Below, piece by piece: positions 16,570 through 52,075 of a stretch of 63,868 nucleotides of DNA. Position 1 is the first letter of the stretch. Each line of letters opens with the position of its first letter. The stretch comes from Selaginella moellendorffii (Eukaryota; Plantae; Lycopodiophyta). The stretch lies in NCBI RefSeq assembly GCF_000143415.4, contig NW_003314313.1, positions 425,759 to 489,626 on the forward strand, read 5' to 3'. Below the pieces are notes generated by a model. That model worked only from the letters and a program-made list of their open reading frames with translations, made no database searches and had not been told where the DNA came from. A program made the position numbers and the translations under genes.

Positions 16570-16609
16570 AGCTTCCAAGCAAATGAGAAGAAAGCGGTAT
16601 CGTTTTGAG

Positions 16610-20508: not shown

Positions 20509-20590
20509 TTTCCCTCCCCGCCATAGCGTAGGGTTTCTCTCTTGGCGCCAATCGTCCAGCTTCAATCGGCTCCAACCGATCGAAATTTCA

Positions 20591-23500
20591 ATGGCCGAGC
20601 TCGCAGAACGGCGATTGTGCGAGGAGCCGAATCCGCGCAGGTAACGAAGATGGATTTCCCATCAATGCAGCTGAAAAATCTTGTTTCTTAGCTATCAAAC
20701 ATTTCTATTCGAGAAAACGCTGGCAATGAACACGATCGTGTGCCTGGAAACTGGGTGTGGCAAAACGATGATCGCCGTGCTTCTCATTCGCTCGCTTTCT
20801 CACTTATTTCGCAAGCCAGAGAAAGGGATTTGCGTGTTTTTGGCCCCAACAGTGAGCCTTTGCGAGCAGGTTAGCATCTTGCTTGCTATCGTGCTAGTAT
20901 TTTGGACTTTTTATATGGTTGGCAGCAAGCCGAGGTCATTGAGCGCTACACTGACCTTTACGTTGGTACTTACGTCGGTGGAACTTCCACCATGGATGTT
21001 CATTGGTGGACAACGCATCTTCAAAAGCAAGAGGTTCTTTCTTTCTATTAACTTTGGCTTTACTCTTCTTGCGTGGAACCTACAGGTTTTTGTCATGACT
21101 CCTGCGATTCTGCTGGACAACCTTCGCCATCGATTTTTTAATCCGGATCATGTTGAGCTGCTAATTTTTGACGAATGTCATCACTGTGCCAAGGGGCATC
21201 CTTATGCGAATATCATGAGCGTAAGTGCTTTCTTTTGCTTCGTTTTCTGATAGTGTTACTGCATTCACAGGAGTTTTATCACAAGCCTGAAGCTAAGTGT
21301 CCGAGAATATTGGGCATGACGGCGTCACCCATTGTTGGAAAAGGTATGAGGATGTTGTGTGCATGAACCTCACCTGCATTTACAGGCAAGACGTGGAGCG
21401 GTCCACAAGCTTTCAAAGAAAGTTTTGATTGCCTTGAAACTATGCTACGCTCAAAGGTTGTTGTCTATCTAAAGTCTCATTTGATGGACCCGCTGGTCTT
21501 TTGTCACAGATTATCACTTTCGCAGATAAAGAGCTAACTAGCTTTTTACCGTCATCTGATATGAAAATCAAGGAGCACTTGCCAGACACGAAAGGCAAGC
21601 ATCGTACAACGGACATCGACAATCGTTTCGAGGTCAACTGAAAGAATTAGCTTGTTATTGTTTAACACATGTTGCACATTTCAGAACTTAACCAGAGAAT
21701 TTCGACTTCCAGAAGAAAGGCAAGCTGTAAATAAGATATACAACACTCTGAACTACTGTCTCTTTGAGTTGGGCCTCTTCTCTGCAAGAAAGGTTGGGCT
21801 AAACAATTTGGGAACCTACGAAATCTCGTATTACAGGCGGCAGAGATTATGCTCGCTGGCTGTGACGGAAAAGGACGTGATGCGGAAGCCGCATTCTTGA
21901 GGCGTGTGCTAAACATTCTGGAAGAGAAAGCGATTTTGGACGGTAACATATAGTAAGTTTTAACTGACAAGTGCGTTCTTGGACAGGTACTGCAGATGAT
22001 CAAATCCGTGCCATTTCTTCTAAAGTCCAACTTTTACTGGATGTGCTTGATGAGTACAAGTGAGACATAATTTTCCCCAATCACACTACTAACTGTTACG
22101 GCTTTGTTATGCAGGTCTGCCCAAGATCTTCGTTGTATTGTGTTTGTTGAGAGAGTGATTGCAGCCAAGGTTTTGACTCTGCTTTTGAACTCTCGTCCCT
22201 ACGTTAGAGCACAGTGTGTAGCAAGTCACAGAAATAAGTTGAAGGGCTTAACTCTGGCAACTCAGAGAAACTCATTGGAAGACTTTCGTGCTGGAAAGGT
22301 GAAAATCGAGTTTGTCTGATTTCTCTGATTTCTCTTATGCAACAATGCTATATAACTGTTCATTACAGGCTAATGTCATTGTGGCGACTAATGTTGCTGA
22401 AGAAGGCCTTGATATTCAAAGCTGTTCTCTTGTTATACGATTCAACATGCCTAAAACCGAGCGTAGCAGTATTCAGTCAAGGGGCCGTGCACGTAAACAA
22501 GGATCTGACTACGTTATTCTGATGGAATCGTGAGCCTACTTTCTTTCAATTCCGGTTATCTCACCTGTTTTCCTCCAGTGGGAACCTCAACGAGGAAAAA
22601 CTCTTACATGCAATACTAGAAGGGGAAAAGTTGATGCATGAGCAGCTACATACTGTTCAGGATACCTATGACCATCAACTTTTTTATCGCCAGAAAGATG
22701 CCTATCATGTTGAGTCCACGGGTGCGGTCGTGAACATCGATTCAAGTGTTTCGTTACTCCACCAATACTGCTCGACACTTGGGTAACTCTTTTATATACC
22801 GTTTCATTCTCGTTTAAGTGTAGCATTTATAGGAATGACGCACATCCGAATTTTCAGTTCTACAAGGGTGAAGACGGGGGAACAACTTGTAACGTGACAC
22901 TTCCTGATATCTGCACCGTCAAATACATCAAAGGCAAAAGATGTGCAACGGAGGAAATCGCAAGAAAGGCTGCATGCCTGGAAGCCTGTCGAAAGCTACA
23001 CATGGCTGGGGCACTATCGGATAATTTGCGTCCAGTTCGGGCTACTAATATCTCCAAAAGTGTCTCAATTACCTCAGGTGTGTTCAATCTCCTATCATTT
23101 TCTTAATGTAATCACGTTATATCACATTCAGATGACATGGATATGTACGAGACGATCATACCTGATGTTTTACAAGGAAAGTTGGGTGTGTTTTCTGAGA
23201 ATCTGACCTTCCACACCTACGTGCTTTCCTTTAGCTCCAGTGACGACAGGTTATCCTATCGTAATTTTGCACTGTTCTTGTCATCAAAGCTAGATGCCAG
23301 CGTCGAAGTTGAACGCTTCGAACTGAATTTGGGACGTGGAAGAAATGTTGTGGTTCAGCTAGGCTCCGTGCAAAATATCATCTTAGACAGTGACAACGTA
23401 AGTTTTGTCGCTTCTGTGTATTATGTTTTGACTTATGCTCCGATTTTCAAGATTGCTGCCGTAAATCGGTTCTACGAAATAGTTTTTCCTATCCTATGGC

Positions 23501-26335
23501 AACGACGACTACCTCCAATCCATCTCCAGCAATACTTACTTCTGCCACTGCTTCCTGGCAAGATAGATGTAGACTGGAAATGCGTTCAGTCTCTCACACC
23601 TCCATCAATAGTCTCAGACAACGATGACAAAAGTGTTTTACATTTTGCAAACTATTCGCTGCGAGCTACAGATATCAAAGGAGGACTGATTCTTACAAAG
23701 CATACCAATGAACCAGTTTTTTATTCTCTTTTGGGTGTTCTTAAGGAAACAACCGCGCAAAGCCCGTTTTCCAATCCCAAATATATTACTTATTCCGACT
23801 ACTTCTTGAAAAGGTAAGATTTGTGAGTTCCTTCTTCGTTTCTGATTGTGAGGAGCGACATACAGGCATAATATGAAACTGCAATATCCAGCCCAACCCC
23901 TTCTGAAAGTGAAGATGCTTGGCGATGTGCAAAACTATTTACTGCCACGTTCAACAGACATGCCTGGCAGGTCGCATAGGAAATCGACTATTGAGCTGCC
24001 GCCCGAGCTTTGCATTCTCTTAGAACCAGAACTTGACTACTCCGTTGTGGCGTCCGTAATGGTGCTTCCTTCCGTTATCTACCGGCTAGAATGTCTAAGT
24101 TCTGCTGCACAGCTGACGAAACTCGTGGGCATTCACATGTCTACAACCATGGTAAAATGCTGTTCGCGTTCATATTTTTATTGTGTTCATTTTTCTTTTT
24201 CCCCTGCAGATGTTGATGGCACTGACTTCTGCAAGCTGTAATGAAGGCTTTTCTCTCGAGAGACTCGAGTTTTTAGGCGATTCATTCCTCAAATTTGCAC
24301 TGAGCTTGCACTTGGTCTCTGAATATCCGGAACAACAAGAAGGCTTTCTTTCACAAAAGCGTCAAGAGCAGATCTCTAACAGCAATTTGCACAGGCTTGG
24401 TGTACAAAGAGGATTGGTGGTAAGCATGCAATAATATGTTTCTAGTCTCTTAAACAGAACTTACAGACGTACATGAGAGACGGGCAGTTTGAGCCGAAGG
24501 ATTGGATTGCACCGGTCCCTTGCTCTTCTTTGGCCAGTCACGAAAAGCTTTTAGGACGGAAGTTATGTGACAAAGGTCATCGTTGGCTGCGAAGAAAATC
24601 GGTTGCAGATGTAATGGAGGCCATCATCGGTGCATACATTACTGAAAACTCCGCTGATGCTGCCTATCACTTCATGACCTGGGCAGGATTTAAGCTGGTT
24701 GACAGGTGTTTAGTACCTGTGTTCTCATGCCAAGCTTCTGAAGTTGACGATATCTGCAATCTGGAAAAGATAATCGGCTATACCTTTCGGAACAAATGCT
24801 TCCTTGTTGAAGCGTTCACTCATGCTTCTTCCAGCGTTCGATCGTATCAGGTAAACAAGTAACTTTTGGAGCTGGACTAACACTGCTTAGTTGTCAGCGG
24901 CTGGAGTATTTAGGCGATGCTGTCCTGGATTACCTCATTGTTCTTCATCTTTATGCGAGCTATCCCAGCTTGCAACCGGGACTTCTCAATGATCTCAAGG
25001 TTGCTACAGTGAACAATGTTTGGTTCGCTTTCGTTGCTGTGCGCCACAACTTTCACAAGTATCTGCGTCACAAGCTTAAAGAGATTGACGAGTATCTTCT
25101 GAACAAAAATGTGCAATGTTTCGAGGATTGGCAGCTTGAGCAACCGCCAAAGGTCAGTCTCTGAGCTTTAAAAGTTTGTCCTCCTCTTGACGCTTGTCTC
25201 TTTTTCTTTTGCAGTGTCTCAGTGATTTAGTGGAATCTCTCGCGGGAGCTTTGTTATTTGATACGGGTGGTAATCTGGAACTAGTGTGGAGCGTATTGGA
25301 GCCCCTTCTGCGCCCGGTTGCCAGTCCCGAGACCTTGGCACTTCACCCAGTCCGAGAGCTTCAGGAGCTATGCCAGCTGAAAGAAATTTCAGCTCCAAGC
25401 TACAACGTTGGAACTTGCTCGGTGACATTGGCAGACGGAGGCATAGTCACAGGACAAGGCTCCGGAGGAGCAAACAAAAAGCTTCTCAAGAACCAGTCTT
25501 CTGCCGATGCCTTGGGAAAACTGAAGGTAATAACAAGTTATGCTCCGAAAACGTTACAGTTTTTTGTTTATATTCAGGCTTTGGGATTTCAACACCCACG
25601 GCACGAACTCCTTCATGCTATTCGGGCCGAGACACACATAGAGGCCTCAACGGTCATCATAAACAACGGTTTGAACTTCAGTGTCCCCGTCGTTACACAG
25701 TGCATGGAATCGGAGCTTGCATCCTTCGTACCACCAATGTCGAGCTCGAGTTCTTCTACAGAATCGGATCTATTTCGGCAGCAAAGTCTTCCAGACCATG
25801 ACTTGCCTTCCGATTTAGAACTTGTCGACACTGAACACGAGTCAGATGTTCTAGCAGCATCACTTGCGGAAGAGTTTGGTCTCGACGATGATCTCCTCGA
25901 GAAGCTTTGCAGTGCTACAGCTTCGTCTACTGTTCCTCCTAGACACGGTAAAAGCTATTTCATGTTTCTATCCTTACGATTTGTGTTTTCTTTCCAGAAG
26001 GTGGTGGCAGTGATTCTTTTGTTGCTGGAGCTCCACGAGCAGAGCTTCAAATTCTCTGCCAAAAGAGACGGTGGTCGGATCCCGAGTACATTATTTGCGA
26101 GGAGAGTGGTCCTCCGCACAAGAAACAGTAAGAAAAGAAAAGAAAAGAATGAAACTCCTAATCCTGCTGATTGTTGTTTTTTTTTTCATCTTGTAGCTTT
26201 GCTTTGGCTGTGACAATCAGTCTTCCAATCGATGGACCCGTGACATTTTATGGAGAGCCCCAGCGAGACATGAAGCGGGCCAAAGACTCGGCAGCCAACG
26301 CCGCCATCGCTTATTTGAAAAAGCTCCTTTCATGA
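20591..26335 (+). CDS. DCL4: Full-length Dicer-like protein, DCL2/DCL4 clade, most DCL4-like (DExD/H helicase, helicase C, DUF283, PAZ, RNase IIIa, RNase IIIb, two dsRBDs)
   Basis: LETGCGKT, ICVFLAPTV, DECHH, GMTASPIVGKG, EEGLDIQSC, QSRGRAR, SSVSLLHQYC (DUF283), PAZ region, ERLEFLGDSFLK, KGHRWLRRKSVADVMEAIIGA, QRLEYLGDAVLD, HPVRELQELCQ, APRAELQILCQKRRW. Exons join in frame where traced. Confidence 0.88.
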
Positions 26336-26512: not shown

Positions 26513-27643
26513 CGTTCTTGCAAAGACGAAGGCGCCACTGCTGTTGCTACAAATCTTCTTCCCCTGCCTCCGGAGTTCTTGGATTTTCTTCTCGGGCAGA
26601 TTGTGGATCCGCGCGTCTACCACGCGGCTCAAACGCTGCGTTACTTCAGGTACTAGAACTCGGGATTCCTTTTCTTTGTTTAATTGGATTGCCAGAGTAA
26701 AGCCGCGGGGAGTTAGCGAAAGAACTTGGGATCAAAATCGAGCCTGTTTCTTGGCTATGTTTCCAGTGTTTTCACTGGCATCGTCCAGGGCCTACAAGTC
26801 TGGAAAGGTGAGAAAATATGAAAAATAAAATAAAAAAATCGAGAACTCTTGTTTGTTTCATTTTCGACAGATTTACGGTATGGATGCGGCCTCCGGGGCT
26901 GCTGTTGCAGCACCTGATATACAATCCGGTGATCACGTGCGCAGCTCCTGGTAAGCGAAGCTTTCATTGCAGTTTATGGGAGTTCTTTCAACTTGAGGTT
27001 TTGGTGTGGGGGCTGGAATACTAACAGGAGTTGATATTTCTCGCCATCGCCTAGCAGCCTGTCGGACCATGCTCCAAAAGTATGAGTTCGGTAGCCGAGC
27101 GAGGCTTTTCCTTTTCCGACGGGACGACGTTCTCCATCCTGCCAGCAAAAAAAGCACTGCAATCCAGTGTCCTTGAGAGACAACCACGTACGTATTCGCT
27201 CCTGTTCTTTCTTACAAGTGAAACTTTGTGCTTGCGTCTTCAGATCAGTCCTGTTCTTATCTCTTGAAGGGAGATTGGAGACCGCCTAAAGCTGTCTCTC
27301 AAGAAAAGGCGAAGGCGGCAGTGGCTCTGGGATTGTAGGAAGAGAATTGCGGAGTTTCCTTGCACCAGGCACGGCCGATGCCGCTCTTGTCGATGGCTAC
27401 AGGTGAGTTCTTAAGCAGTTTCTTCTTGCAACGCATCCTTCCTGATGCGGGTTAAGCTACACACTTCTTTTGTTTCGTTTCTCTTGTGATTTGAGGGCTA
27501 TATGTTGCAGAGGTGAGACAGATCAAATCTGCCATGTCCTGGCCATGCACAATGACCGGCTTGCTTGCGCGTTTCCAACACCAAACGCCAGTTTGTCGCT
27601 AAAATCACCAAGGAACGAATGCCATACGAGCAAATCTTTATGA
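26513..27643 (+). pseudogene. NOL1/NOP2/Sun RNA m5C methyltransferase pseudogene (unit 1)
   Basis: Homologous to 52076-53824 but lacks the start codon, has several deletions and lacks the DAECTHDGS exon. Confidence 0.85.
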
Positions 27644-27776
27644 TCAGAATCTCGCACTTCTCTACCTTCGCGAGTGTACAGTGCCCCTATGTCCAAAATG
27701 GACAGTAAAGCCCGAGCACACTCTTCAAGAAAGACGAAAATTACGCGTATGGTTGTAAGATCCGCTGCTAATACTA

Positions 27777-28055
27777 AGGTCAGCTTTGATAATTGTCGTT
27801 TCACAATGTCAGGGTGGTGTCGTGTGTTCTCGTCGTTTGCATTTTCACGAGCTTTCCGGTCGATCTAGGAGACACCTTACAGCGCTCTACATTCCCAACC
27901 ATAGGCGGGACAAGTTTTAGGAGCCTTGATCGTCCTCGACACATACGAACCCACTATCTGATTCGGCAATCTCGAGCCCATTGTGATCACTGCTGAGGGA
28001 CTAACCATCAAAGCGCGTACCTGTGACGAGTTGACGAGCTTATCTCTTGGATAGA
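27777..28055 (-). pseudogene. 3' fragment of the LisH-domain gene (unit 1)
   Basis: Matches 53990-54350 with deletions. Confidence 0.75.
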
Positions 28056-28401
28056 TGCTCTCTCATGAATTTAATAAGGAAAAGATGATAACGGTATCAT
28101 GGATGTTTCATACGCAGCTTCGATCTGTCAGAATCTACGACATTAGGGTCCTAGGGTTTCACTGTTTCGTCCAGCTTCAATCGGCTCAGATCAATCGACT
28201 CAAGCTCCAAACGTAGCCGAATCTGCGCAGGTAACGAAGATCGATTTTCTATCATTAATGTAGCTGGAAAATCTTAGCTATCAGACATTTCTATTCGAGA
28301 AAATTGTGTGACTGGAAGCTTGTCGAAAGCTACACACGACTGGGTTTCTATCAGATAAATTACATCCAGTTCCTCCTACTAGGATCTCCAATACTGCCTC
28401 A

Positions 28402-31400
28402 ATGACTTCAGGTGTGTTGAATCCACTAACGTTTTCTTGAAGTAATCACACTATATTAGATTCAGATGACATGGATATGTATGAGACGATCATACCTGAT
28501 GTTTTCCAAGGACAGTTGGGTGTGTTTTCTGAAAATCTGACCTTCCACACCTACGTGCTTTCCTTTAGCTCCAGTGACGACAGGTTCTCCTATCGTAACT
28601 TTGCGCTGTTCTTGTCATCAAAGCTGGATGCCTCCCTCGAAAATGAAACCTTCGAACTGGATTTGGGACGTGGAAGAAATGTTGTGGTTCGGCTTGGCTC
28701 GATGCAAAATATCAGCTTAGACAGTGACAAGGTAAGGATTTTGTCGCTTTTGTGGATAATGTTTTGACTTATGCTCTGCTTTTCAAGGTTGCTGCCGTAA
28801 ATCAGTTCTACGAAAATGTTTTCGCTACTTTATGGCGACGATGGCCTCATCTCCAGCCATACTTCCTTCTGCCGCTGCTTCCTGGAAAGATAAATGTTTT
28901 GGATGTGGACTGGAATTGCGTTCAGTCTCTCACACCTCCATCAATGGTCTCAGACAGCGATGACAAAAGTGTTTTACATTTTGCGAACTATTCGCTGCGA
29001 GCTACAGATATCAAAGGAGGATTGATTCTTACAAAGCATACCAATGAACCAGTTTTTCATTCTCTTTTGGGTGTTCTTAAAGAAACAACCGCGCAAAGCC
29101 CGTTTTCCAATCCCAAATATAGTACTTATTCCGACTACTTCTTGAAAAGGTAAGATTTGTGAGTTCCTTCTTCGTTTCTGATTGTGAGGAGCGACTTATA
29201 GGCATAATATGAAACTGCAATATCCAGCCCAACCCCTTCTGAAAGTGAAGATGCTTGGCGATGTGCAAAACTATTTACTGCCACGTTCAACAGACATGCC
29301 TGGCACGTCGCATAGGAAATCGACTATTGAGCTGCCGCCCGAGCTTTGCATTCTCTTAGAACCAGAACTTGACTACTCCGTTGTGGCGTCCGTAATGGTG
29401 CTTCCTTCCGTTATCTACCGGCTAGAATGTCTAAGTGCTGCTGCACAGCTGACGAAACTCGTGGGCATCCACATCTCTACAACCATGGTAAAATGCTGTT
29501 CGCGTTCATATTTTTATTGTTTTCATTTTTCTTTTTTCCCTGCAGATGTTGATGGCACTGACTTCTGCAAGCTGTAATGAAGGCTTTTCTCTCGAGAGAC
29601 TCGAGTTTTTAGGCGATTCATTCCTCAAATTTGCACTGAGCTTGCACTTGGTCTCTGAATATCCGGAAGAACAAGAAGGCTTTCTTACTCAAAAGCGTCA
29701 AGAGCAGATCTCTAACAGCAATTTGCACAGGTTTGGTGTACAAAGAGGATTGGTGGTAAGCATGCAATAATATGTTTCTAGTCTCTTAAACAGAACTTAC
29801 AGACGTACATGAGAGACGGGCAGTTTGAGCCGAAGGATTGGATTGCACCGGTCCCTTGCTCTTCTTTGGCCAGTCACGAAAAGCTTTTAGGACGGAAGTT
29901 CTGTGACAAAGGTCATCGTTGGCTGCGAAGAAAATCGGTTGCAGATGTAATGGAGGCCATCATCGGTGCATACATTACTGACAACTCCGCTGATGCTGCC
30001 TATCACTTCATGACCTGGGCAGGATTTAAGCTGGTTGACAGGTGTTTAGTACCTGTGTTCTCATGCCAAGCTTCTGAAGTTGACGATATCTGCAATCTGG
30101 AAAAGATAATCGGCTATACCTTTCGGAACAAATGCTTCCTTGTTGAAGCGTTCACTCATGCTTCTTCCAGCGTTCAATCGTATCAGGTAAACAAGTAACT
30201 TTTGGAGCTGGACTAACACTGGTTAGTTGTCAGCGGCTGGAGTATTTAGGCGATGCTGTCCTGGATTACCTTATTGTTCTTCATCTTTATGCTAGCTATC
30301 CCAGCTTGCAACCGGGACTTCTCAGTGATCTCAAGGCTGCTACAGTAAACAACGTTTGGTTCGCTTTCGTTGCTGTGCGCCACAACTTTCACAAGTATCT
30401 GCGTCACAACCATAAGAAAGAGATTGACGAGTATCTTCTGAACAAAAATGTGCAATGTTTCTTGGACTGGCAGCTTGAGCAACCGCCAAAGGTCAGTCTC
30501 TGAGCTTTTAAAGTTTGTCCTCCTCTTGACGCTTGTCTCTTTTTCTTTTGCAGTGTCTCAGTGATTTAGTGGAATCTCTCGCGGGAGCTTTGTTATTTGA
30601 CACGGGTGGTAATCTGGAACTAGTGTGGAGCATATTGGAGCCTCTTCTGCGCCCGATTGCCAGTCCCGAGAGCTTGGCACTTCACCCAGTCCGAGAGCTT
30701 CAGGAGCTATGCCAGCTGAAAGAAATTTCAGCTCCAAGCTACAACGTTGGAACTTGCTCGGTGACATTGGCAGACGGAGGCTTAGTCACAGGACAAGGCT
30801 CCGGAGGAGCAAACAAAAGGCTTCTCAAGAAGCAGTCTTCTGTCGATGCCTTGAAAAGACTGAAGGTAATAACAAGTTCTGCTCCGAAAACGTTACAGTT
30901 TTTCTTTTGTATTCAGGCTTTGGGATTTCAACATCCACGGCACGAACTCCTTCGTGCTATTCGGGCCGAGACACACATAGAGGCCTCAAAGGTCATCATA
31001 AACAACGGTTTGAACTTCAGTGTCCCCGTCATTAAGTGCATGGAATCGGAGCTTGAACCCTTCGTACCACCAGTGGCGAGCTCGAGTTCTTCTGCAGAAT
31101 CAGATCTATCTCGGCAGGAAAGTCTTGCTCCAGACCATGACTTGCCTTCCGATTTAGAACCTGGCAACACTGAACACGAGTCAGATGTTCTAGCAGCATC
31201 ACTTGCGGAAGAGTTTGGTCTCGACGATGCAACTAGTCATCTCCTCGAGCAGCATTGCAGTGCTACAGCTTCGTCGACTGTTCCTCCTAGACACGGTTAA
31301 AGCTACTTCATGTTTCTTTCCTTAAGATTTGTTTTTGCTTTCCAGAGGGTGGTGGCATTGATTCTTACATTGTTGGAGCTCCAAGAGCAGAGCTTCAAAT

Positions 31401-31676
31401 TCTCTGTCAGAAGCGACGGTGGTCGGATCCCGAGTACATTATTTCGGAGGAGACTGGTCCTCCTCACATGAGACAGTAAGAAAAGAACAGTATGAAACTC
31501 GTAATCCTGCTCATTGATGATTTTCTTCGTCTTGTAGATACATTTTGGCTGTGAAAATCAGTCTTCCAATCCATGGACCCGTGACATTTTATGGAGAGCC
31601 CCAGCGAGATGTAAAGCGTGCCAAAGACTCGGCAGCCAACGCCGCCATCGCTTATTTTAAAACGCTCCTTTTATGA
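28402..31676 (+). CDS. Helicase-less Dicer-like paralog (PAZ, RNase IIIa, RNase IIIb, two dsRBDs), apparently intact
   Basis: Paralog of the 3' part of the full-length gene. First ATG of the spliced leader at 28402 (MTS|DDMDMYE), alternative ATG at 28471. Both RNase III signatures kept, splice sites kept, all indels versus copy 1 are multiples of 3, stop at the homologous position. Confidence 0.7.
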
Positions 31677-31935
31677 TGAGTTCAAAGTCGTCAAAGGTAA
31701 ACGTTTTTTTTCTTTGTATTCTTTACGGCGATCGATTCATTTCTTTGCGGCATCATCCAGTTACAAGGTGAGACGAAAATACTTCTAGATGACTATATGG
31801 CTGAATTTTCTCTTTTTCTCTCTCCCCTTAGAGTTGGATGTGGCCTCGTTTGATACAATCTGGTGATCGTTAAGCTAAGCTTTCATCGCAACGGTTTAAT
31901 GAGTTCCGTGACAATAGTTTGATCTTTCGTGAGCA

Positions 31936-33373
31936 ATCGCGTGAATTGAGGTAGCGCCAGCCGCCGCGAGCGACCCATTCTCTTGCAAAGACCAAGGCGC
32001 CACGCCAAATCTTCTTCCCTGCCTCCGGAGTTCGTGGATTTTCTTCTTGGGCAGAATGTGGATCATCGCGTCTACCATACGTCAAACGCTGCCGCTTTAC
32101 TTCAGGTACTAGAACTCGGGATTCCTTTCCTTTGCTTGATTGGATTGCCAGAGTAAAGCCGAGTGCCAGTTAGCGAAAGAACTTGGGATCAAATTCGAGC
32201 CTGTTTCTTGGCTACCCGGATTTTTCCAGTGTTCATCCCAAGCGTCACCAGTGCCTACAATTCTGGACAGGTGAGAAAAAATGATACAGAAAAAAGAAAA
32301 CTTCGAGAACTCTTGTTTGTTCTTGTGGTCGACAGATTTACGGTATGGATGTGGCCTCCGGGGCTGCTGTTGCAGCACTTGATGTGATCACGTCCTCGAC
32401 GTCTGCGCAGTTCTTGGTAACCGAAGCTTTCATTGCAGTTTATGGGAGTTCTTTCAACTTGTAGGTCCGAAACTATCATGATGGCAGAGGTTTTAGGTGT
32501 GGGGGCTGGAACGGTAGCCGAGCGAGGGTGTTCCTTGCCGACGGGAGGACGTTCTCCATCCTGGCAGTTAAAAAAGCATAGCAATCCAGTTTCCTTGAGA
32601 AACAACCATGTACGTATTCGATCCTGTTCTTTCTTACAAGTGAAACTTTGTGCTTGCGTCTTCGGACCAGTCCTGTTCTTATCTCTTGATACTCACTGAT
32701 TGGAGACCTCCTAAATCGAAAAGGGAGCTGTCTCTCAAGAACTGGCGAAGATGGCAGTGGCTCTGGGATTGTAGGAAGAGAATTGAGGAGTGTCCTTGCA
32801 CCAGGCACGGGCTAAGGCTCGCTTTGTGTTGTTTACGAATGCTTGGTGGTTTTCTCCACAGGTGCTCGTGGATGCCGAGTGTACTCACGATGGCTCGCTG
32901 AAGCACATCTGCAAGTTTGAGCAGTGGGGATGGAAAACCTCCGAGAAACGGTTTTTCAACTCGGAACGCATATCTACAATCACTAATCTTCAGGTATCGA
33001 GTCATCTAGTTTCGTGTTGGTCCTTGACATCTTGGAAGTGTAGCTAGCAACGGCTTCAGACTGTTGAAGCAGGGTGGGACACTCGTTTACAGCACTTGCA
33101 GTTTGCTTTTCAGTTCCTTTCCTTCAGGGATTGTAAAACCATGGATCGTCACGATCAAAACGAGGGAGTTCCTAAGCAGTTTCTTGCAACGCGTCCTTCC
33201 TGACACTTCTTTTGCTTCCTTTCTCTTGTGATTTGACACTGGGGCTACGTGTAGAGGTCAGAGAGATAAGTCTGCCAAGTCCTGGCCATGCACAATGACC
33301 GGCTTGTGCTTGCGGGTTTCGCCAGTTCGCTAAAATCACCAAGGAACGAATGCCATACGAGCAAATCTTATAA
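31936..33373 (+). pseudogene. NOL1/NOP2/Sun m5C methyltransferase pseudogene (unit 2)
   Basis: ATG changed to ATC, with in-frame stops and deletions relative to 52076-53824. Confidence 0.85.
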
Positions 33374-35857
33374 TCAGAACCTCGCAGTCCTCTACCTTAG
33401 CGAGACTGCTAAGGTTCTATTGTTCTAGCTTTAGCATTGTCACCATTGTATGTACTGTGCAGTGCTCTCCAAAATGGACACTAAAGCGCGAGCACTTCGT
33501 GGAAGGAACACTCTTCAAGAAAGAAGAAAATTACGAGTATGGTTGTAAGAAGACATTTTGTCCACTGCCAACACAAAGGGTAAAATTGCCATGCAGAACA
33601 AATTAAATGATGCCTCATATAATGTTGAGTATAATGCATTTCATCCCAAGTGACATGATTTCTTGGATTTTGACAAACAGTCACAATGATAATCACTTCC
33701 AAGTATACCACCACTATTATAGCTTTTAAATTTATAATAATGTATTTTTTTTATCACATGATCACTTGCTGCAAACCAATCAAAATGACACATGTTAATA
33801 TCATCAATTCATATAAATTTAAAATATCGGATTTAATTCCCAATATCACAGGTGCTAAGAATATCTGGACAACTATCTCAATAAAATAAAGGGAAAATTA
33901 TATAAAAGCCCCTTAAAATTTTTAAAATTGCCAAAAAAAAAAAAAAAACCATAGGATAACCACAAAGCAAAATCTAAACCCTCTGAACTTTTAGATATTG
34001 CAAAATACTTCTAATATTACATTTATAACTAGAAATTGATACAGTTATGACCATAACACCCACAATAAAATTCATTTTTGTCATTCTTGAGATTTTCAAT
34101 ATGAATGGATTTCTTTTTTTCTATAGTAGGATTTCTCCCGAAGGCAATAAGATCTTACTGTTGCTCCAGCACTCTATGCCCAACTTGATTTTGATGATGA
34201 GCATGAGGGGTTATTCTGGAAGTGTCATTGGTGCTGTTTTGGCAGCAAATCTTCTAAGTCTAAAGATCTTATTGCTTACAAGAACATCTCAAGCAAACAT
34301 GAATCTCAAGTAAATATTAAATCATACTTAGGAAAGAATGAACAAACTTTAGCTCTATCTAAATTGGCCTTTTGAAACTTCAATTTTCCCTATAATAAAG
34401 TATAGAAAACAGTTTTATCCACTTCATCTTGATAAATTTTCACTTAACAGAGGAAGTAGACATGTACATGCTTTTGTGGTTGCATAAGAGGGGTATTTAA
34501 TCTTCTTCATAATTGGCCTTTTTACAGTGTGGGTAGGTGGTCTCCTTGGATTTTGGTTTGGTCATTGTGAATGAAATAGACTGCTGTATTTTCTACCCTT
34601 TTACGAATTGCACACCATAAGATTTAAGTTCCTGGTGGAAAAATCACTTGGTGAGATGTTATGGCAGCTCTCACTAATAATATCTTGAATCAAGCTGAAT
34701 CATTCATATACTTCAAAGATGTGTCTGGCTCCTATTGGTCCACATGTAATATTAGTGTGGAAAAAACACAAGCATAGGATATATCATGAATATCCATTCC
34801 TTATGCCATGGATGAGGCTTCATGCCCATAGCAATGGCCTATGCTATATGTGGATCCATTTATGGCCTCATAGACCGATTCATCCCATGCATTCAAACAA
34901 GTTGTTAATGTTGCAAACCAAATGGACAATTGACCAAATTACATACTATACTGCTTTGTCTAGAGCATTATATTCTCACCTCTTACTCTTGTTGCTCATG
35001 GCAAAAGAACCAAATTATCATTTTTTGGCACACTTCTTTTAACATTGTGTTCAAAGCAAGTGTAACTAAACTCCATCTAGCTCCATTGCAAATTTGTGGA
35101 CATATATTGTTTAGAGTCATGTCTCTAATGCATCCTATTGAGTTTATCCTTTGTTGCCATTGATTTGCAATCTAGCTCTCTCAACACTTTAGTTTCACAT
35201 CATGATACTTAGAAAGATTTGCATATGACTCAAAATAGCTTGAACATAAGGAATCATTATAAATGTTTTAGCAGGGATTTAGGTGACCTACTAGTTGCTT
35301 ATATTGTAATAGAAGGGACCTTCTTGTACTAGTTGCTTATAGCAAAATAACTAGACTATAGCACTTTTTTCTATATAGCAACACCTTTGTAGATGGTCCC
35401 AGGTTAATGATGTTTAACCACTCACTCCATGCTCATGTTCTTGATCATAGCCAACCAATTCCATGAATTGGTGGGGCTCATATTTGGATTGTGTACTATG
35501 GAAGGGTGTGTAGTGTTGATGTCTGGACCTAGAATTCTCCCAAGAGCAGCATGCTGAAGGAGATTTGACAATATGGATGTTGCAATTGTATGTAGTAACA
35601 TTTAGATGAGAAGAGTTAATGAAGAGATAAATGTTTTATATTTTGTATCTTCCCAAGTAGAGCAAAAGAAAAAAGTATAGGCAAAATGGAATTACACTTA
35701 AGTTTAGGGATCCAAAGAAAAATGACTTGACCTAGGCAATGCTCATCATAGACAAGTGTTAAGTAATTAGGAATGGATATAAAATCATGTAATATATAAG
35801 TAACACTTAGACATGTTGGAAAAAAACTCCCGCTCACTATTGTATGCATTTGCATTG

Positions 35858-37910
35858 TGTAAGCAACTAAAAAAAATGACTTGAAAGATGATCCATAGAG
35901 TTCAAATATAGAGGAAAAGGGCCCATGAATAAAAGTGCACTTCTTTATCCAATCAATTAAAGGTTTTGGGATACTTAGGGTTAAATGTTCTTGGGTTTAA
36001 CGGGTTGAATAACCTCCAAGGAAGTCCAAATTAAGGAGGTTACTGTGAGACACAAAATCCCTAGGCCCCAAAGTGGAGCCGGAAAGGGTGCCACGTGGTA
36101 GTGGCTGAAGCGAGAGCCAAACGAGCGTAACACGTTTGGACCAAAAGCTCCGACTTGAAAAGTCAAGAGCGGGAGTGGAACTCCCAACGAAGTGCAAGAG
36201 GAACGAGCACGAAGCGAGCAAAAAGCGAGGCTCCAAAAAGGGACCCAAAAGGACCAACACATGACACGTGGAAGTGTCCGAGATGGACTCGAGTTGGAGT
36301 CCGAAGTAGTATCCGAGATGGACTCGAGTTGGAGTCCGAAGTAGTGTCCGAGATGGACTCGAGTTGGAGTCCGAAGTGGAGTCCGAGATGGACTCGAGTT
36401 GGAGTCCGAAGTGGAGTCCGAGATGGACCCGAGTTGGAGTCCGAAGTGGAGTCCGAGATGGACCCGAGTTGGAGTCCGAAGTGGAGTCCGAGATGGACCC
36501 GAGATGGACCCGAGATGGAGTCCGAGATGGAGCCCGAGATGGACCCGAGATGGAGTCCGAGATGGAGTCCGAGATGGAGTCCGAGGTGGACCCGAGATGG
36601 ACCCGAAATGGAGTCTGAGATGGAGTCCGAGATGGACCCGAGATGGAGTCCGAGATGGAGTCCGAGATGGACCCGAAATGGAGTCCGAGATGGACCCGAG
36701 ATGGAGTCTGAGATGGAGTCCGAGATGGAGTCCGAAGTCGAGACCGAGACCGGGACCGAGACCGGGACCGAGACCGGGACCGAGACCGAGACCGAAATCG
36801 GGACCGAGACCGAGACCGAGGCCGAGGCCGAGACCGAGCCCGAGCCCGAGTCCGAGTCCGAATCCGAGTCCGAGTCCGAGTCCGAGTCCGAGTCCGAGTC
36901 CGAGTCCGGAGCCTGAGAGGGTGAAAGCCCAAGGCGTTCGTCTCCCAGACCCTGGGGGGTTTGGTGAGCTCCAAAAGTATAGTAGGGGGAGGACTGCAGT
37001 GGAGCCAGTTTGGCCAGGAAAGGCCAGTTTGGCCTAGGAAGGCCGGACCCAGTGTTGGGTGATGAGCTGCCCACTGGGATGTCCAAGACTAGAGTGAACA
37101 CAGACCGACAAGCGGGGTAGCTTGGTGAAGTGTTCAAGAGCCGGCTCTAGTTCCCCCGGGAGATCGACTGGCCGATGCTCCCAGTCCAAGTGTGGGTGGC
37201 ACTACCTACTTGGATACCTGGTGTGGCTCAACGGAACCCGCTCTAAGCCATGGCTAGAGCACCCAAGGGCAGAAGGCGAGGAGAGTACCCAGGTGGCTCG
37301 CGTAAGGCCACGGTGTTCCGAAATGTTGTCCCAAAGGCCCAGACTGTGGAAAGGAAGAGGAGCAGTCCTTTGGGGTAGGGACCAAGGACACAGTCGTGTG
37401 GTGAGGAAGTCCCAGAGGACCGTGGGACTTAGTGGCCGGGCCTGTGGGTCTCGATCCAGTGGCAGTGTTGGCAAACACGGCCAGGGGCAGAAAGGGACTT
37501 AGTGGGGACTGACAGAGGGATATTGGGGAAGGCTATTCCCCTTGTCGGTGGGCATCCTAAGGATGCTAAGGAGTGGATCTGAGATGACCACTCACGGATG
37601 GTTTGCCTAGTCTTGGAGAGCCAAGACTGTGATGCAAGTGGTATTGGACTACAAGTGTGGCAAAGGTGATTGGGCATGGCCTTAGCGTAACGGGCTGCTA
37701 TGTCGGTGGTACCTTTGAGTGTCGGTCATGGGATCGGACACGTGGAGCACTTGGACCAAGTGCAAATGTTGAATGGCATGGATGCCATTCTCGGGGCTAG
37801 CAAGTCCCAAATCCTGGATTGGACTTATGGAGGTTGTGAATGAGACTCCTCCAAGTGGTTAGTGGTGTGGTTAAGTGACTAAAGCAGAATGGAAAATTTA
37901 GTCGCTTACA
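35858..37910 (+). mobile_element. LTR 1 (2053 bp) of an LTR retrotransposon
   Basis: TGTAAGCAACTAAA...TTTAGTCGCTTACA terminal inverted repeat (13/14 match); followed by a PBS. Confidence 0.85.
36271..36910. repeat. GC-rich compound minisatellite inside LTR 1 (35-, 11/12- and 6-bp units)
   Basis: GAGATGGACTCGAGTTGGAGTCCGAAGTGGAGTCC units, then GAGATGGAGTCC/GAGATGGACCC, then GAGACC/GGGACC and (GAGTCC)n. Confidence 0.95.
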
Positions 37911-37913
37911 ATT

Positions 37914-37925
37914 TGGTATCGGAGC
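37914..37925 (+). promoter_or_regulatory. Primer-binding site (tRNA-iMet type)
   Basis: TGGTATCGGAGC 3 nt after the LTR end; the canonical plant site is TGGTATCAGAGC. Confidence 0.85.
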
Positions 37926-39641
37926 TGTTCCTTAGTCCGACTTTTATTGGTGCTCAAGTACATCACCACTAGTGTTGGCATCGGAAGGTCCGAGGAGTGG
38001 GCCTATCCTTGAGGAGTAGCAAGTCGGGAAGACATGGCTTTCCATTACAGTTCATGTGTGAACTTGTAGACGAGGTGGTGGATAGAAAAGGGCCAATAAT
38101 GGAACGACTTTGGGATCTTGGGAACAGTATATGGTTTTCCTCAAAGAGTTGAGGATGTGATCCAGATGAGCGTTTGACTTAGCAAACTGGCTAATGTAGT
38201 TGTGGTAAACAACTACAGTTGGGATCACGGGAAAGATAAAGACTCCAAAGCAATAAAGGAGTCACAAGATTTTCCTCATATAGTTGAGGTTGGTGCTCAT
38301 GAATGTGAGACCAGAAGTAATGACCGTGGGAGGTCAAATACGGAAGAGGACTCAAGTCCTTGAAAAGGTAGCTGGGGCTACCTCTAATAAATGCTGGAAC
38401 AACCCAAGGAGTTGGGGGTGTATTAAGTGGATGAGTTGGTGTTCTCATCACATGGACAAGTAGTCCTAAGGGGCAAAGGTTGCCCCCAGAGAACAAAATC
38501 AAGTGTCGGAGTAACACTTGTGAAAATAGTCCTTTTGAGTAGGACAGGAATGCAAGAAGTGTATTCCAGTGAGCTAGTGCCTCACAAGTAGGACTTTACG
38601 GGTCTGTGGATTAACCAAGTCCAAAACTGCTGGATGACTCAAGTAGAGTCAACGGATGGTTCTAAAAGGACTAATAGAAGCATTTGGACTGAGGTGTGTT
38701 GTACCCCACAAAGGATGGGGGGGGATCATAGGATCCAAGGATGAGAACAGAGGGTATCTCATCGATGGCAAAATGTGCCATGCTAAAGTTATGGGAAAGG
38801 TGTTCCCAGAAGAAAACAACTTTGACATAAAGTTGTGTGTGACTTCTATGGTGCAGTGCTAACGGATGGTTGGCATGAGAAAGAGCGGTGTTGGTCTTGG
38901 CAAAGACTTAGACACGAAGGGGAAATGTCATAGAGGTAGGCTTGTGGAGCCGATGGTGTGAAGACACCAAATGTGCCAAGGTGTGATACCTTGAGGCTAT
39001 GTTAGTGGGTTTATGAGAACCCCTTGACAAAGGAATCCCAATGGAAATGGGAATAGCATAGCCTAAGCTGCAGAGCATGCAGTTGGAGTGTGGTGACCCA
39101 GATAATGATGGAGGTGTGAAAGCACCAAGCAATGAGTTGTAGGACTTGACAACTATGAGGCAACTAAGCAAGAGATTCAAAATAACTGGTTAAACGGGTA
39201 GAAGGTAGCTACCCAAGACTTCTTAATAGCATAGGGAAGTTGGATATACCCTTACGGGGGATAAATTGCTTGTGTTGCGATATAGTAAGTCAATGTCATA
39301 AAAGGAAATACTCATTGTCAAGAAAGCCATCATTGGGACACCCGAACACTCTAGAACACCAGAAGGTGGTGTTTGATGTCGCGAGGGCAATAGATAAAGC
39401 CCAAGGGACTAAGTCCCTAGCGAATGATGGATAGAAGGTGCTATCCAAATGTCCAAGGTTGCGGAGACAGGAGAGGACTGTTTACCCGAGTTGGACAAAG
39501 CCAAAAATGGAATTTTGGCAAGGCTAGTGATGGGCATGTAAAGGCCCATAAGCAACAATGTAATCCCAGTGTGTGGGATTATAAGGTGAGCATACCCAGA
39601 TTGAGGAACCACTCCCTAGGCTATTGGGTAGGTTCATCCCT
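37926..39641 (+). mobile_element. Retrotransposon internal sequence, degenerate or non-autonomous
   Basis: Follows the PBS; no long ORF and no recognisable RT or integrase motifs. Confidence 0.6.
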
Positions 39642-47920: not shown

Positions 47921-48029
47921 TCTCAAAGGAAAAGATGATAACGGTACCATGGATGTTTCATACGCAGCTTCGATCTGTCAGAATCTACGACATTAGGGTC
48001 CTAGGGTTTCACTGTTTAGTCCAGCTTCA

Positions 48030-51000
48030 ATCGGCTCAGATCAATCGACTCAAGCTCCAAACGTAGCCGAATCTGCGCAGGTAACGAAGATCGATTTTCT
48101 ATCAATTAATGTAGCTGGAAAATCTTAGCTATCAGACATTTCTATTCGAGAAAATTGCTTGCCTGGAAGCTTGTGAAAACCTACACACTACTGGGCTTCT
48201 ATCAGATAAATTGCATCCAGTTCCTGCTACTAGGATCTCCAATACTGCCTCAATGACTTCAGGTGTGTTGAATCCACTAACGTTTTCTTGAAGTAATCAC
48301 GTTATATTAGATGGATATGTACGAGACCATCATACCTGATGTTTTCCAAGGACTGGTTTCTGAAAATCTGACCTTCCACACCTACGTACTTTCTTTTAGC
48401 GCCAGTGACGACAGGTTCTCCTATCGTAACTTTGCGCTGTTCTTGCCATCAAAGTTGGATGCCTCCCTCAAAAATGGAAGCTTCGAACTGGATTTGGGAC
48501 GTGGAAGAAATGCTGTGGTTCGGCTTGGCTCGATGCAAAATATCAGCTTAGACAGTGATAAGGTAAGGATTTTGTCGCTTTTGTGGATAATGTTTTGACT
48601 TATGCTCTGCTTTTCAAGGTTGCTGCCGGAAATCAGTTCTACGAGAAACTTTTTTCTACTTTATGGCGACGACGGCTACCTCCAATCCATCTCCAGCCAT
48701 ACTTACTTCTGCCACTGCTTCCTGGCAAGATAAATGTTTTGGATGTGGACTGGAAATGCGTTCAGTCTCTCACACCTCCATCAATAGTCTCAGACAACGA
48801 TGACGAAAGTGTTCTACATTTTGCAAATTATTCATTGCGAGCTACAGATATCAAAGCAGGACTGATTCTTACAAAGCACACCAGGAAACCGTTATTTTAT
48901 TCTCATCTGGGTGTTCTCGAAGAAATGACGGCGCAGAGCTCGTTTTTCAATCACAACTATAATACGTATTCCGACTACTTTCTGGAAGTGTAAGACTTGT
49001 TAGTTTCTTCTTCGCTCTGATTGGAACACGCGACTTACAGACATAATGTCAAACTGCAATATCCAGCCCAACCACTTCTAAAAGTGAGCAACTTGCCTGG
49101 CAATGTGCACAACTATTTACTGCCCCGTTCAACAGACTTGTCAAGCGCGTCGAATGGCATATCGACTAACAAGCTGCCACCCGAACTTTGCATTCTCTTA
49201 CAACCAGAAGTTGACTGCTCCATTGTGGTGTCTGTGATGGTCCTGCCTTCAGTCATCTACCGGCTACAATGTCTAAGTACTGCTGCGCAGCTGACGAAAC
49301 TCGTGGGCATCCACATATCTACAACCACGGTAAAAAGTTCGTTTTATTATTTTCATTGTTTGTTTGTTTGTTTGTTTGTTTTTCTTTTTTCCCTGCAGAT
49401 GTTGATGGCACTGACTTCTGCAAGCTGTAATGAAGGCTTTTCTCTCGAGAGACTCGAGCTTTTAGGCGATGCATTCCTCAAATTTGCACTGAGCTTGCAC
49501 TTGGTCTCTGAATATCCGGAACAACAAGAAGGCTTTCTTAGTCAAAATCGTCAAGAGCAGATCTCTAACAGCAATTTGCACAGGCTTGGTGTACAAACAG
49601 GATTGGTGGTAAGCATGCAATAATATGTTTCTAGTCTCTTAAACAGAACTTACAGACGTACATCAGAGACGGGCAGTTTGAGCCAAAGGATTGGATTGCA
49701 CCGGTCCCTTGCTCTTCTTTGGTCAGTCACGAAAAGATTATAGGACGGAAGTTATGTGACAAAGGTCATCGTTGGCTGCGAAGAAAATCGGTTGCAGATG
49801 TAATGGAGGCCATCATCGGTGCATACATTACTGACAACTCCGCTGATGCTGTCTATCACTTCATGACCTGGGCAGGATTTAAGCTGGTTGACAGGTGTTT
49901 AGTACCTGTATTCTCATGCCAAGCTTCTGAAGTTGACGATATCTGCAATCTAGAAAAGATAATCGGCTATACCTTTCGGAACAAATGCTTCCTTGTTGAA
50001 GCGTTCACTCATGCTTCTTCCAGCGTTCGATCATATCAGGTAGACGAGTAAGTTTTGGAGCTGGACTAACACTGGTTAGTTGTCAGCGGCTGGAGTATTT
50101 AGGCGATGCTGTCCTGGATTACCTTATCGTTCTTCATCTTTATGCGAGCTATCCCAACTTGCAACCGGGACTTCTCAGTGATCTCAAGGCTGCTACAGTA
50201 AACAACGTTTGGTTCGCTTTCGTTGCTGTGCGCCACAACTTTCACAAGTATCTGCGTCACAACCATAAGAAAGAGATTGACGAGTATCTTCTGAACAAAA
50301 ATGTGCAATGTTTCGAGGACTGGCAGCTTGAGCAACCGCCAAAGGTCAGTCTCTGAGCTTTTAAAGTTTGTCCTCCTCCTGACGCTTGTCTCTTTTTCTT
50401 TTGCAGTGTCTCAGTGATTTAGTGGAATCTCTCGCGGGAGCTTATACGGGAGTCTGGAACTAGGGTGGAGCATATTGGAGCCGCTTCTGCGCCCGATTGC
50501 CAGTCCCGAGAGCTTGGCACTTCACCCAGTCCGAGAGCTTCAGGAGCTATGCCAGCTGAAAGAAATTTCAGCTCCAAGCTACAACGTTAGAAGTTGCTCG
50601 GTGACATTGGCAAACAGACGCTTTGTGAGAGGACAAGGCTCCGGAGGAGCAAACAAAAGGCTTCTCAAGAAGCAGTCTTCTGCCGATGCCTTGGAAAAAC
50701 TGAAGGTAATAACAAGTTATGCTCCGAAATTGTTACAGTTTTTCTTTTATATTCAGGCTTTGGGATTTCAACACCCACGGCACGAACTCCTTCTTGTTAT
50801 TCGGGCCGAGACACACATAAAGGTCATCATAAACAACGGTTTGAAGTTCAGTGTTCCCGTCGTTACACAGTGCATGGAATCGGAGCTTGCATCCTTCGTA
50901 CCACCAATGTCGAGCTCGAGTTCTTCCGCAGAATGAGATCTATCTTGGCAGGAAAGTCTTGCTGCAGTCCATGACTTGCCTTCCGATTTAGAACTTGGCG

Positions 51001-51765
51001 ACACTGAAGACGAGTCAGATGTTCTACCAGCATCACTTGCGGAAGACTTTGGTCTCGACGATACAACCAGTAGGCAGAGAATTTGAAGCTCTGCTCATGG
51101 AGCTCCAACAACAAAAGAATCATTGCCACCTTCTGGAAAGCCAGCAAAGTACTGCAAATTCATGTGCTTGATGGTGTGAATTCCAGGTAAAGAATGCTCC
51201 ATAAGAAATCATAGAGTCTTTGGAAACAGGTACCGGGCAATATGTAAATGTGTCCCAGCTTGGAGAATGCTTTCCAGGAGCTATTGAAGGAACAAGGGTG
51301 ATTGTTCTGTTTTCGTTGTATGAATATAATTTGTTAAAAAAATGCTACAACGTTTTAAGCATAATTGGAAGGGAAGCCAACACACAGTGAAGCAAGGTAT
51401 GCAACCAAATTATGGATGTGAAGAAAACACCAGAAAGCAAAGTTTTTACCGCGTCTAGCAGGAGGAACAGTAGAGGAAGGTGTAGCACTGCAAAGTTGAT
51501 CGACTGGTGGTAACACTGATATGTTGGCAAACTCAGAAAGCACGGTGGATTGCTTAAGACGGTGGTCGGATCCCGAGTACATTATTTGCGAGGAGAGTGG
51601 TCCTCCTCACATGAAACAGTAAGAAAAGAAGAGAGTGAAGACTCTACTGATCGATGCTGTGGCAATCAGTCTTTCAATCGATGGACCCGTGAGTGTAGAG
51701 CCCCAGCGAGACGTGAAGCGAGCCAAAGACTCGGCATCCAACGCCGCCATCGCTTATTTGAAGAA
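48030..51765 (+). pseudogene. Helicase-less Dicer-like pseudogene (unit 3)
   Basis: Same helicase deletion as unit 2; 13-nt frameshifting deletion at ~50443 in RNase IIIb; premature TGA at 50934-50936; inverted segment ~51070-51555; deleted last exon. Confidence 0.88.
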
Positions 51766-52075
51766 GGTTCTCTTGTGGTGACGTCGATAAGCAAAGGTAA
51801 GCTTTTTATTTTTCCTTAATGAGCAATGGCATTGCAAACACGAAGACGCTGCTCTAAAACTCTCTTCTTTTGTTGGATCGAGTAAAGCCGTGCGCTTCCA
51901 ATGGAAGTGCTTGGGATCCAAGTCGGGCTTGTTGTCAGTGTGCTTCTCAAGCGTCACTGGAAGGTGAGAAGAAAATACTTCTAGAGGACTATAGAGTTAC
52001 GTGTGGCTTGATACTAACTTTCATTGTAATCCATTGACAATAGTTTGATCTTGGTTTTAGGGTTTTTCGTGAGCA

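Follow-up and report, generated by a model that had tools for sequence, protein, structure and literature searches.

In a window of 63,868 nucleotides from the lycophyte Selaginella moellendorffii (contig NW_003314313.1, positions 425,759 to 489,626 of the forward strand; coordinates below count from its first letter unless another scaffold is named), self-comparison revealed three Dicer-related units, with a methyltransferase gene or remnant lying 3' of each. Copy 1 is the full-length Dicer-like parent, in which Pfam recognized DEAD/ResIII, Helicase_C, Dicer_dimer, PAZ, two RNase III and double-stranded RNA-binding (dsRBD) domains, with DEAD at residues 19-177, Helicase_C at 330-444 and Dicer_dimer at 513-595 of the protein. 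Copy 2, the subject of this report, is a transcribed, helicase-less gene with an intact reading frame. Copy 3 has the same truncation; it also has a premature TGA, at 50934, and beyond 51071 an inversion together with an insertion. Three further copies, designated c4, c5 and c6, were found on two other scaffolds (Table 1).

Table 1. Dicer-related copies and associated features in the window and on scaffolds GL377572.1 and GL377903.1.
Feature	Sequence	Position	Strand	Remarks
Copy 1, full-length Dicer-like parent	window	20591..26335	+	1510 residues, RefSeq XP_002982062.2; exon-level and whole-protein Pfam searches
Copy 2, helicase-less	window	28150-31676	+	duplication unit 2
Copy-2 leader, remnant of parental 5' untranslated region and exon 1	window	28167..28230	+	about 65 bp; matches copy 1 20552-20640
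Leader intron, parent-derived	window	28231..28277	+	GT..AG; ATG-TAG pair inside at 28258
Exon-2 remnant (YQTFLFEK)	window	28278..28303	+	joined at 28303/28304 to DUF283 tail
Untranslated remnant, last DUF283 helix (LEACRKLH...)	window	28312..28401	+	former internal ATG is ACG
New exon 1	window	28402..28411	+	start codon 28402-28404
Exons 2-4	window	28460-28731, 28788-29149, 29202-29487	+	Platform, PAZ, connector helix; spliced joints in RNA
Exons 5-8	window	29546-29755, 29803-30186, 30234-30491, 30554-30865	+	RNase IIIa, RNase IIIb, dsRBD1
Exons 9-11	window	30917-31295, 31346-31475, 31538-31676	+	predicted disordered linker, dsRBD2; stop codon 31674-31676
Decayed RsmB-F methyltransferase remnant, duplication unit 2	window	31925..33432	+	intact homologue on GL377572.1 (read as other haplotype)
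Copy 3, pseudogene	window	47926..51766	+	copy-2 junction and ATG (48253) present; deletions of 11, 9, 13 and 9 nt
c4	GL377572.1	10001-12680 of examined stretch		750 residues, helicase-less; 27-nt in-frame deletion in dsRBD1
c5	GL377903.1			cut off by scaffold end; copy-1-like 3' end; 610-residue model XP_024523828
c6	GL377903.1 (unplaced, 10 kb)			98% identical to copy 3; 11-nt and 9-nt deletions in common with copy 3

A first-pass annotation, made from the letters of the DNA alone, had described copy 2 as a Dicer that keeps the parent's upstream region, an exon-1 remnant and the leader intron, and then jumps from TFLFEK to LEACRKLH. Sequence comparison with copy 1 confirmed this structure for the proximal upstream region, the remnant and the intron, and a blast search of the copy-2 leader region returned 20552-20572 and 20625-20717 of copy 1. 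The jump is real, in that about 2252 bp of copy 1 (approximately 20718-22969), corresponding to the helicase and most of DUF283, are gone. The old start codons are lost as had been stated, the ATG at 20591 of copy 1 being ATC in copy 2 and that of LHMAG being ACG, and an in-frame TGA is present at 28309-28311. The ATG at 28402, which is ATT in copy 1, is the sole ATG after 28186, save the ATG-TAG pair within the leader intron. The proposal that this start codon was newly gained in copy 2 proved incorrect, since it is common to copy 3, c4 and c6. All four copies likewise have the deletion junction and lack both older ATGs, and of the four only copy 2 has the in-frame TGA. The shared junction and ATG therefore predate copy 2, and a single old event founded a small family of at least four truncated copies. 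An assembly artefact was ruled out: four copies, spread over three scaffolds, carry the junction, as do RNA assemblies made independently.

The coding frame of copy 2 was intact as predicted, with eleven exons in one open frame and ten introns that are all GT..AG. We found no frameshift, premature stop in the coding frame or lost splice site in copy 2, the defects by which an unprocessed pseudogene would be recognized. The statement that all downstream splice sites are kept was correct as to the sites themselves and needed amendment at the main acceptor of intron 1, which RNA places six bases further upstream, at the AG of 28458-28459, with exon 2 beginning at 28460. The resulting protein has 913 residues, an N-terminus of MTSDSDDMDMYE and the same sequence as RefSeq isoform X1. 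The peptides MTSDSDDMDMYE and MTSDSDDMNMYE are N-terminal examples of those private to copy 2 or c4.

Both RNase III signatures, ERLEFLGD and RLEYLGD, and both downstream D..E pairs were present in copy 2, and the catalytic acids E327/D334/D428/E431 and E511/D515/D598/E601 were all retained. All columns invariant across 56 plant Dicer-like (DCL) proteins, these eight catalytic residues included, were kept. In a Pfam scan, the copy-2 protein matched Ribonuclease_3 over two stretches (E = 3.5e-41) and PAZ (PF02170) at residues 166-272 (E = 1.3e-11), whereas the helicase and DUF283, both present in copy 1, were not found in it. Both dsRBDs are preserved, as had been noted, dsRBD1 within exons 5-8 and dsRBD2 as a dsrm/DND1_DSRM match at residues 837-907. 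An AlphaFold2 model of the protein (predicted local distance difference test score 78; predicted template modelling score 0.73) opens with the first Platform strand (residue 8) and contains the Platform strands (8-124), PAZ (156-268), which matches the PAZ cassette 4ngc, the connector helix (273-302), both RNase III domains, dsRBD1, a disordered linker and dsRBD2. The best structural matches were Arabidopsis DCL3, DCL4 and the dicing-state mammalian Dicer, with template modelling (TM) scores by target of 0.73-0.76, that of the RNA-bound DCL4 chain 9kby being 0.76; the ordered part of the matched Dicer entries is the same core as that of the copy-2 model. Since the model starts at the first Platform strand and the ordered Dicer core is matched, the new start codon lies at a domain boundary. 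On the basis of the model, the product appears to equal the cutting part of Dicer, and copy 2 looks able to cut double-stranded RNA (dsRNA).

To follow transcription, one raw stranded RNA run of unknown tissue (X30) and three contig sets (X25, X1 and X6) were aligned to copy 2, which alone was covered, with an identity cut of 97%; the cut removes copy-1 reads where divergence exceeds 3% and so disfavours copy 1 in places. A spliced sense transcript, the evidence that the first-pass annotation had called for, was found both by single-nucleotide polymorphisms specific to copy 2 and by the deletion junction. The X30 reads were all in the orientation expected of + strand RNA, and GT..AG joints were observed at introns 2-10 and at the corrected intron 1. 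Letters found only in copy 2 were present in X30 at 29437 (G, 4/18 reads), 30293 (T, 3/14), 30601 (C, 5/11) and 30643 (T, 5/10). The deletion junction is covered by mismatch-free contigs of X25 and X6, runs from two studies, and the copy-2-specific 5' kilobase was detected by word searches in RNA assemblies from eight studies. RNA depth starts in the 28162-28292 bin, and an X25 contig ends at 28185/28186 against an Illumina adapter; this position matches the parent's leader and may be where the copy-2 transcript begins. Just 5' of copy 2, at 27900-28030, X25 depth reaches 48 over a short element that is found again at unit boundaries, with matches near 47381-47819 and 54025-54349.

In the 3' region (exons 9-11), X30 depth was 3-5.5, with joints at 31294>31345 (5 reads) and 31475>31538 (6 reads). 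Over the 3' kilobase, copy 1 diverges from copy 2 by 4-15%, and copy 3 and c4 by 5-10% and then by over 17%. Because this divergence is mostly beyond the 97% cut, most or all X30 reads at exons 9-11 are best assigned to copy 2. In the central region, a five-copy alignment showed c4-private letters in 60-80% of X30 reads and copy-2-private letters in approximately 8-25%, and in approximately 50% near 30600, while letters private to the full-length alleles amounted to 0-10% where scorable, among the variants listed. In X30, reads from truncated copies, chiefly c4, exceed those from the full-length gene, the copy-1 share being only roughly bounded. Some assembly contigs look chimeric, such as an X1 contig with c4 letters in exon 3 and non-c4 letters in exon 4; per-copy assignment therefore rests on raw reads and mismatch-free contigs.

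Scaffold GL377572.1 and the window are collinear, with identities of 98.2% across the copy-1 region and 96.2% across the 12.7 kb that start at copy 3, and on the basis of this similarity the scaffold is read as the other haplotype. On this scaffold c4 is the only truncated copy, and the 14-kb block found between units 2 and 3 of the window is missing. c4 is a chimera of copies 2 and 3. Its first 2.7 kb differ by 4.4% from copy 2 and by 7.9% from copy 3, and beyond about 30800 it tracks copy 3, with an identical premature stop before dsRBD2 and the inversion plus insertion. In copy 3, the stretch homologous to 31245-31406 of copy 2 is inverted and has approximately 300 bp of extra sequence. Since c4 carries this rearrangement, the rearrangement is older than the split of the two haplotypes. 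In a 29-protein tree, copy 2 and c4 formed a clade with a support of 100. On GL377903.1, c5 and c6 occupy 1-2982 and 8217-10111, separated by a Dicer fragment in inverted orientation and by a stretch of N. The Dicer array has more members, or varies more, than the window alone reveals. Copy 3 has an extra 13-nt deletion beyond those in common with c6, and both copies are dead as judged from their lesions. With regard to disabling alleles, which had been named earlier as a possible objection, they are present in copy 3 and c6 and, in part, in c4, and none was found in copy 2 itself.

The divergence between copies 2 and 1 is a mosaic, with 9-15% at both ends and 0-2.7% (about 1%) over 29000-30200, where introns are equally similar. 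Exons 5-8 are the zone most homogenised with copy 1 in the divergence profile, and intron 5 shows no difference among the three window copies. The locus is thus dominated by gene conversion and unequal crossing-over. The earlier concern that similarity to copy 1 could be explained only by recent gene conversion applies to much of copy 2, namely approximately 29000-30200, and not to its ends.

The six coding indels that had been reported between copies 2 and 1 were all recovered, with lengths of 9, 9, 3, 3, 3 and 9 nt; copies 2 and 1 also differ by four non-coding indels, of 2, 5, 2 and 11 nt. Multiples of three thus account for 6/6 coding versus 0/4 non-coding indels (Fisher p = 1/210, by hand arithmetic). 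Two indels, of 9 and 3 nt, could be polarised to the copy-2 lineage, and both are in frame. The methyltransferase of unit 2 has decayed, as had been claimed, with 27 indels in 1.5 kb and an 11% difference from the intact copy. Among 62 scorable amino-acid differences between copies 1 and 2, eight fall in the highly conserved columns (203 of 848), and all eight are conservative. In exons 10-11, which are unconverted and show approximately 10% divergence, there is no indel or stop, as compared with two or more indels in the 62-nt intron 10 and one of 11 nt in the 3' flank; c5 gave no polarisation of these exons, since copy 1, c1' and c5 are nearly identical there. From these sequence comparisons, frame maintenance is a stronger signal of selection than the ratio of non-synonymous to synonymous substitution rates (omega), and the constraint on copy 2 seems weak or recent.

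Copy 2 is represented in RefSeq by models XP_024542805-7, of which XP_024542807 has 911 residues and XP_024542805/6 have 913 residues with the RNA-supported acceptor; exon 6, used as query in an exhaustive HMMER search, retrieved a 911-residue protein identical to our first exon model. c4 corresponds to XP_024527014-17 (750 residues). Our literature searches found no paper discussing these truncated genes. Copy 2 is thus annotated already, without a study found, and it has an architecture known in plants but a different ancestry. The copy-2 protein is 90% identical to copy 1 over 99% of its length. In a search of a protein collection, the closest relatives of the parent were a Diphasiastrum protein (39%) and the DCL4s of bryophytes and seed plants; nothing above this 39% was found outside S. 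moellendorffii by the protein-collection and HMMER searches, which may reflect the contents of the collections. In the 29-protein tree, which included no DCL1, the Selaginella clade lies outside DCL2+DCL3 (Shimodaira-Hasegawa-like approximate likelihood ratio test value 99), on a stem of length 1.03, in a polytomy with bryophyte DCL4, the Diphasiastrum protein and seed-plant DCL4. The name 'DCL4-like' given to the gene earlier is plausible, and for the parent we regard it as reasonable but unproven; the copies are named Dicer homolog 2, 4-like and 3b-like at NCBI. The locus bears on whether S. moellendorffii possesses a DCL4-type gene, one study having found none in this species (PMC4607528). 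The reported absence was perhaps due to fragmentary earlier gene models (497-residue SELMODRAFT entries).

Taken together, our preferred interpretation, in which we place about even confidence, is that copy 2 belongs to a small, structurally unstable family of helicase-less Dicer-like genes, is expressed and makes a working enzyme. On this view, a single ancestral deletion of approximately 2.25 kb, genomic and in frame, took the DExD/H helicase and most of DUF283 out of a tandemly duplicated full-length gene. With the original start codons lost, translation moved to the ATG just 5' of the Platform domain, and the truncated gene later underwent re-duplication, reshuffling through unequal crossing-over and patching through gene conversion. 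The probable outcome is an intact copy 2, a dead copy 3 and c6, and a chimeric c4 ending at 750 residues. The mRNA comes from the parent's proximal promoter region, is spliced at inherited sites and encodes Platform-PAZ-connector-RNase IIIa/b-dsRBD1-linker-dsRBD2. By analogy with Giardia Dicer and with mDCL of the moss Physcomitrium, the protein would bind a dsRNA end in its PAZ/Platform pocket, measure and cut without ATP-driven translocation. Being without DUF283 and the helicase, it would also be uncoupled from partners binding those domains. ATP independence, proposed earlier, would follow from this analogy; competition with the parent enzyme, also proposed earlier, may occur. We consider it possible, and rather doubtful, that the helicase-less form is the main expressed form of this Dicer lineage, with one working truncated copy per haplotype, copy 2 on one and c4 on the other, and the spares decaying, so that an ATP-dependent helicase Dicer would be in the course of turning into a minimal enzyme that acts from dsRNA ends alone.

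Somewhat less probable than a working enzyme, and still to be taken seriously, is the explanation that copy 2 is a transcribed functionless relic, in which the helicase deletion killed the gene, transcription persists through the proximal promoter duplicated along with it, and the frame is open only through repeated gene conversion from the selected full-length neighbour and the short time since the last such event. Several observations weigh against a working enzyme. Copy 2 is nearly identical to copy 1 across exons 4-6 and the introns, and since 29000-30200 was recently overwritten from a copy-1-like donor, the intact frame there is uninformative on selection. The changes unique to copy 2 in a five-copy parsimony analysis, 7 synonymous and 20 non-synonymous, gave a branch omega of 0.85 that is indistinguishable from 1 (p = 0.65 versus neutrality), so that the branch ratio proposed earlier as a check spoke neither for nor against constraint; the changes are few, and gene conversion blurs branches. 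The pairwise omega between copies 1 and 2 was 0.62, and none of the pairwise, three-copy and five-copy estimates separates neutrality from the family's relaxed level of 0.5-0.6. The sister copies are dead (copy 3 and c6) or truncated by the stop and the rearrangement (c4), and a separate copy-2 unit is present on one haplotype and absent from GL377572.1, suggesting that copy 2 may be dispensable. The RNA depth of copy 2 is low (1-5x in about 12% of one run), the single contig spanning the leader intron (X25, 28201-28323, mismatch-free) is unspliced, and the start codon at 28402 has a weak context, with T at -3 and A at +4. Some human and fly Dicer variants without the helicase and DUF283 lose activity in vitro (PMC7827160). 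On the other hand, a relic does not readily account for the unconverted ends at 28402-28850 and 31250-31676, which are 9-15% different from copy 1 and still open, nor for the indel-free exons 10-11. The methyltransferase remnant of unit 2 decayed despite an intact donor nearby, and the differences between copy 2 and copy 1 avoid conserved columns. Moreover, truncated copies supply most of the family's reads in X30, which a dead locus need not do, although it can.

It is also conceivable, though unlikely, that the protein is made and acts as a competitor or modulator, occupying dsRNA ends or yielding products that are not loaded, and thereby damping the full-length pathway. A damping role has been proposed for the RNase-three-like proteins of plants. 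Such a role would fit the retention of PAZ, the dsRBDs and the catalytic centre together with the loss of the partner-binding DUF283 and helicase, as well as the excess of truncated over full-length transcripts in X30. However, a pure inhibitor would not need all eight catalytic residues, yet all are kept, and Physcomitrium mDCL adds to the accumulation of small interfering RNA (siRNA) rather than merely blocking it (PMC10721683). A role at the RNA level only, in which the locus would be a source or target of siRNA tuning the Dicer array, or the transcript a decoy, seems to us very improbable; near-identical tandem and inverted pieces occur in the array and transcripts exist, but the reads lie on one strand with no antisense partner seen, and the reading frame is kept.

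If copy 2 indeed makes a working enzyme, it would offer a clean natural comparison of a Dicer with and without the helicase and DUF283, in terms of ATP need, processivity, product length and partners. The parent and its truncated derivative lie side by side, approximately 90-95% identical and with the scar visible, and dead, chimeric and intact versions occur in one individual. The purpose of the Dicer helicase is still debated, and natural helicase-less Dicers are, to our knowledge, few and mostly ancient. If copy 2 is inactive, the locus would be a warning that gene conversion can hold a long frame open in a dying gene.

Other features of the window surround the Dicer array. The RsmB-F-type methyltransferase occurs in three window copies, of which 26516-27674 and 31925-33432 are decayed remnants and the third, at 52065-53883, is a close match to the intact 423-residue product on GL377572.1. 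The 14-kb block between units 2 and 3 (33500-47400), which has no counterpart between the matching stretches of GL377572.1, contains two 2.4-kb direct repeats (35535-37910 and 39633-42069) that are 97% identical. These carry internal tandem repeats with copies at approximately 35-nt offsets, a GC content near 56% and a strong G-over-C and A-over-T skew. A direct repeat of 847 bp is found at 57179-58025 and 63023-63868, the latter reaching the window end, with 99.8% identity. Upstream of the array, 2399-20508 holds a 4-5 kb gene in four tandem copies, and one open reading frame of the fourth copy matches the C-terminal domain of GMC oxidoreductases.

Among known systems, the mouse oocyte Dicer isoform (7yyn) is likewise shortened at its N-terminus, and its dicing-state core matches the copy-2 model with a TM score by target of 0.73. 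This isoform is more active on long dsRNA. It differs from copy 2 in that it arises from an alternative promoter of a single Dicer gene and keeps most of the protein (1765 residues), whereas copy 2 is a gene with a genomic deletion. With plant DCL4 (Arabidopsis 9kby/9kbz and Marchantia), copy 2 has two C-terminal dsRBDs in common, and its residues 9-716 align to DCL4 761-1541; the identity is only 30-39%, and the stem of the Selaginella clade is very long. DUF283 of Arabidopsis DCL4, a domain largely deleted in copy 2, binds DRB4 (PMC7827160). A truncated DCL2 variant of Medicago truncatula, cited in the same paper (PMC7827160), is likewise a shortened paralogue beside full-length ones and differs from copy 2 in belonging to the DCL2 clade.

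Giardia Dicer is active without a helicase, DUF283 or ATP (PMC7384945, PMC7827160). The Giardia intestinalis enzyme (2ffl) resembles copy 2 in its Platform-PAZ-connector-RNase IIIa/b core and in a sequence match over the PAZ region; it has no dsRBD, however, and its match to the copy-2 model is weak (TM approximately 0.30-0.36, as compared with 0.76 for DCL4), and the two share no close ancestry. The nearest architectural parallel in plants that we considered, Physcomitrium mDCL, is without the helicase and dimerisation domain, and its mutant has an siRNA phenotype (PMC10721683, PMC5144951). The phenotype indicates that a helicase-less architecture can work in plants. A 'minimal domain set' DCL1b class has also been described in Marchantia, mosses and ferns (PMC11799827). 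Copy 2 is similar to mDCL and DCL1b in that it is also without the helicase and dimerisation domain and keeps PAZ and RNase III. Membership of copy 2 in the mDCL family by descent was rejected on the basis of its 90% identity to the neighbouring gene, the parental introns, the deletion scar and the nesting within the Selaginella clade, in a tree without mDCL sequences. In contrast to mDCL and DCL1b, which are old and cluster with DCL1, copy 2 is recent, arose independently from a DCL4-grade gene and has two C-terminal dsRBDs. Shortened DCLs have been suggested to arise often (PMC5144951, PMC10721683, PMC11799827), and copy 2, if active, would support such a repeated origin.

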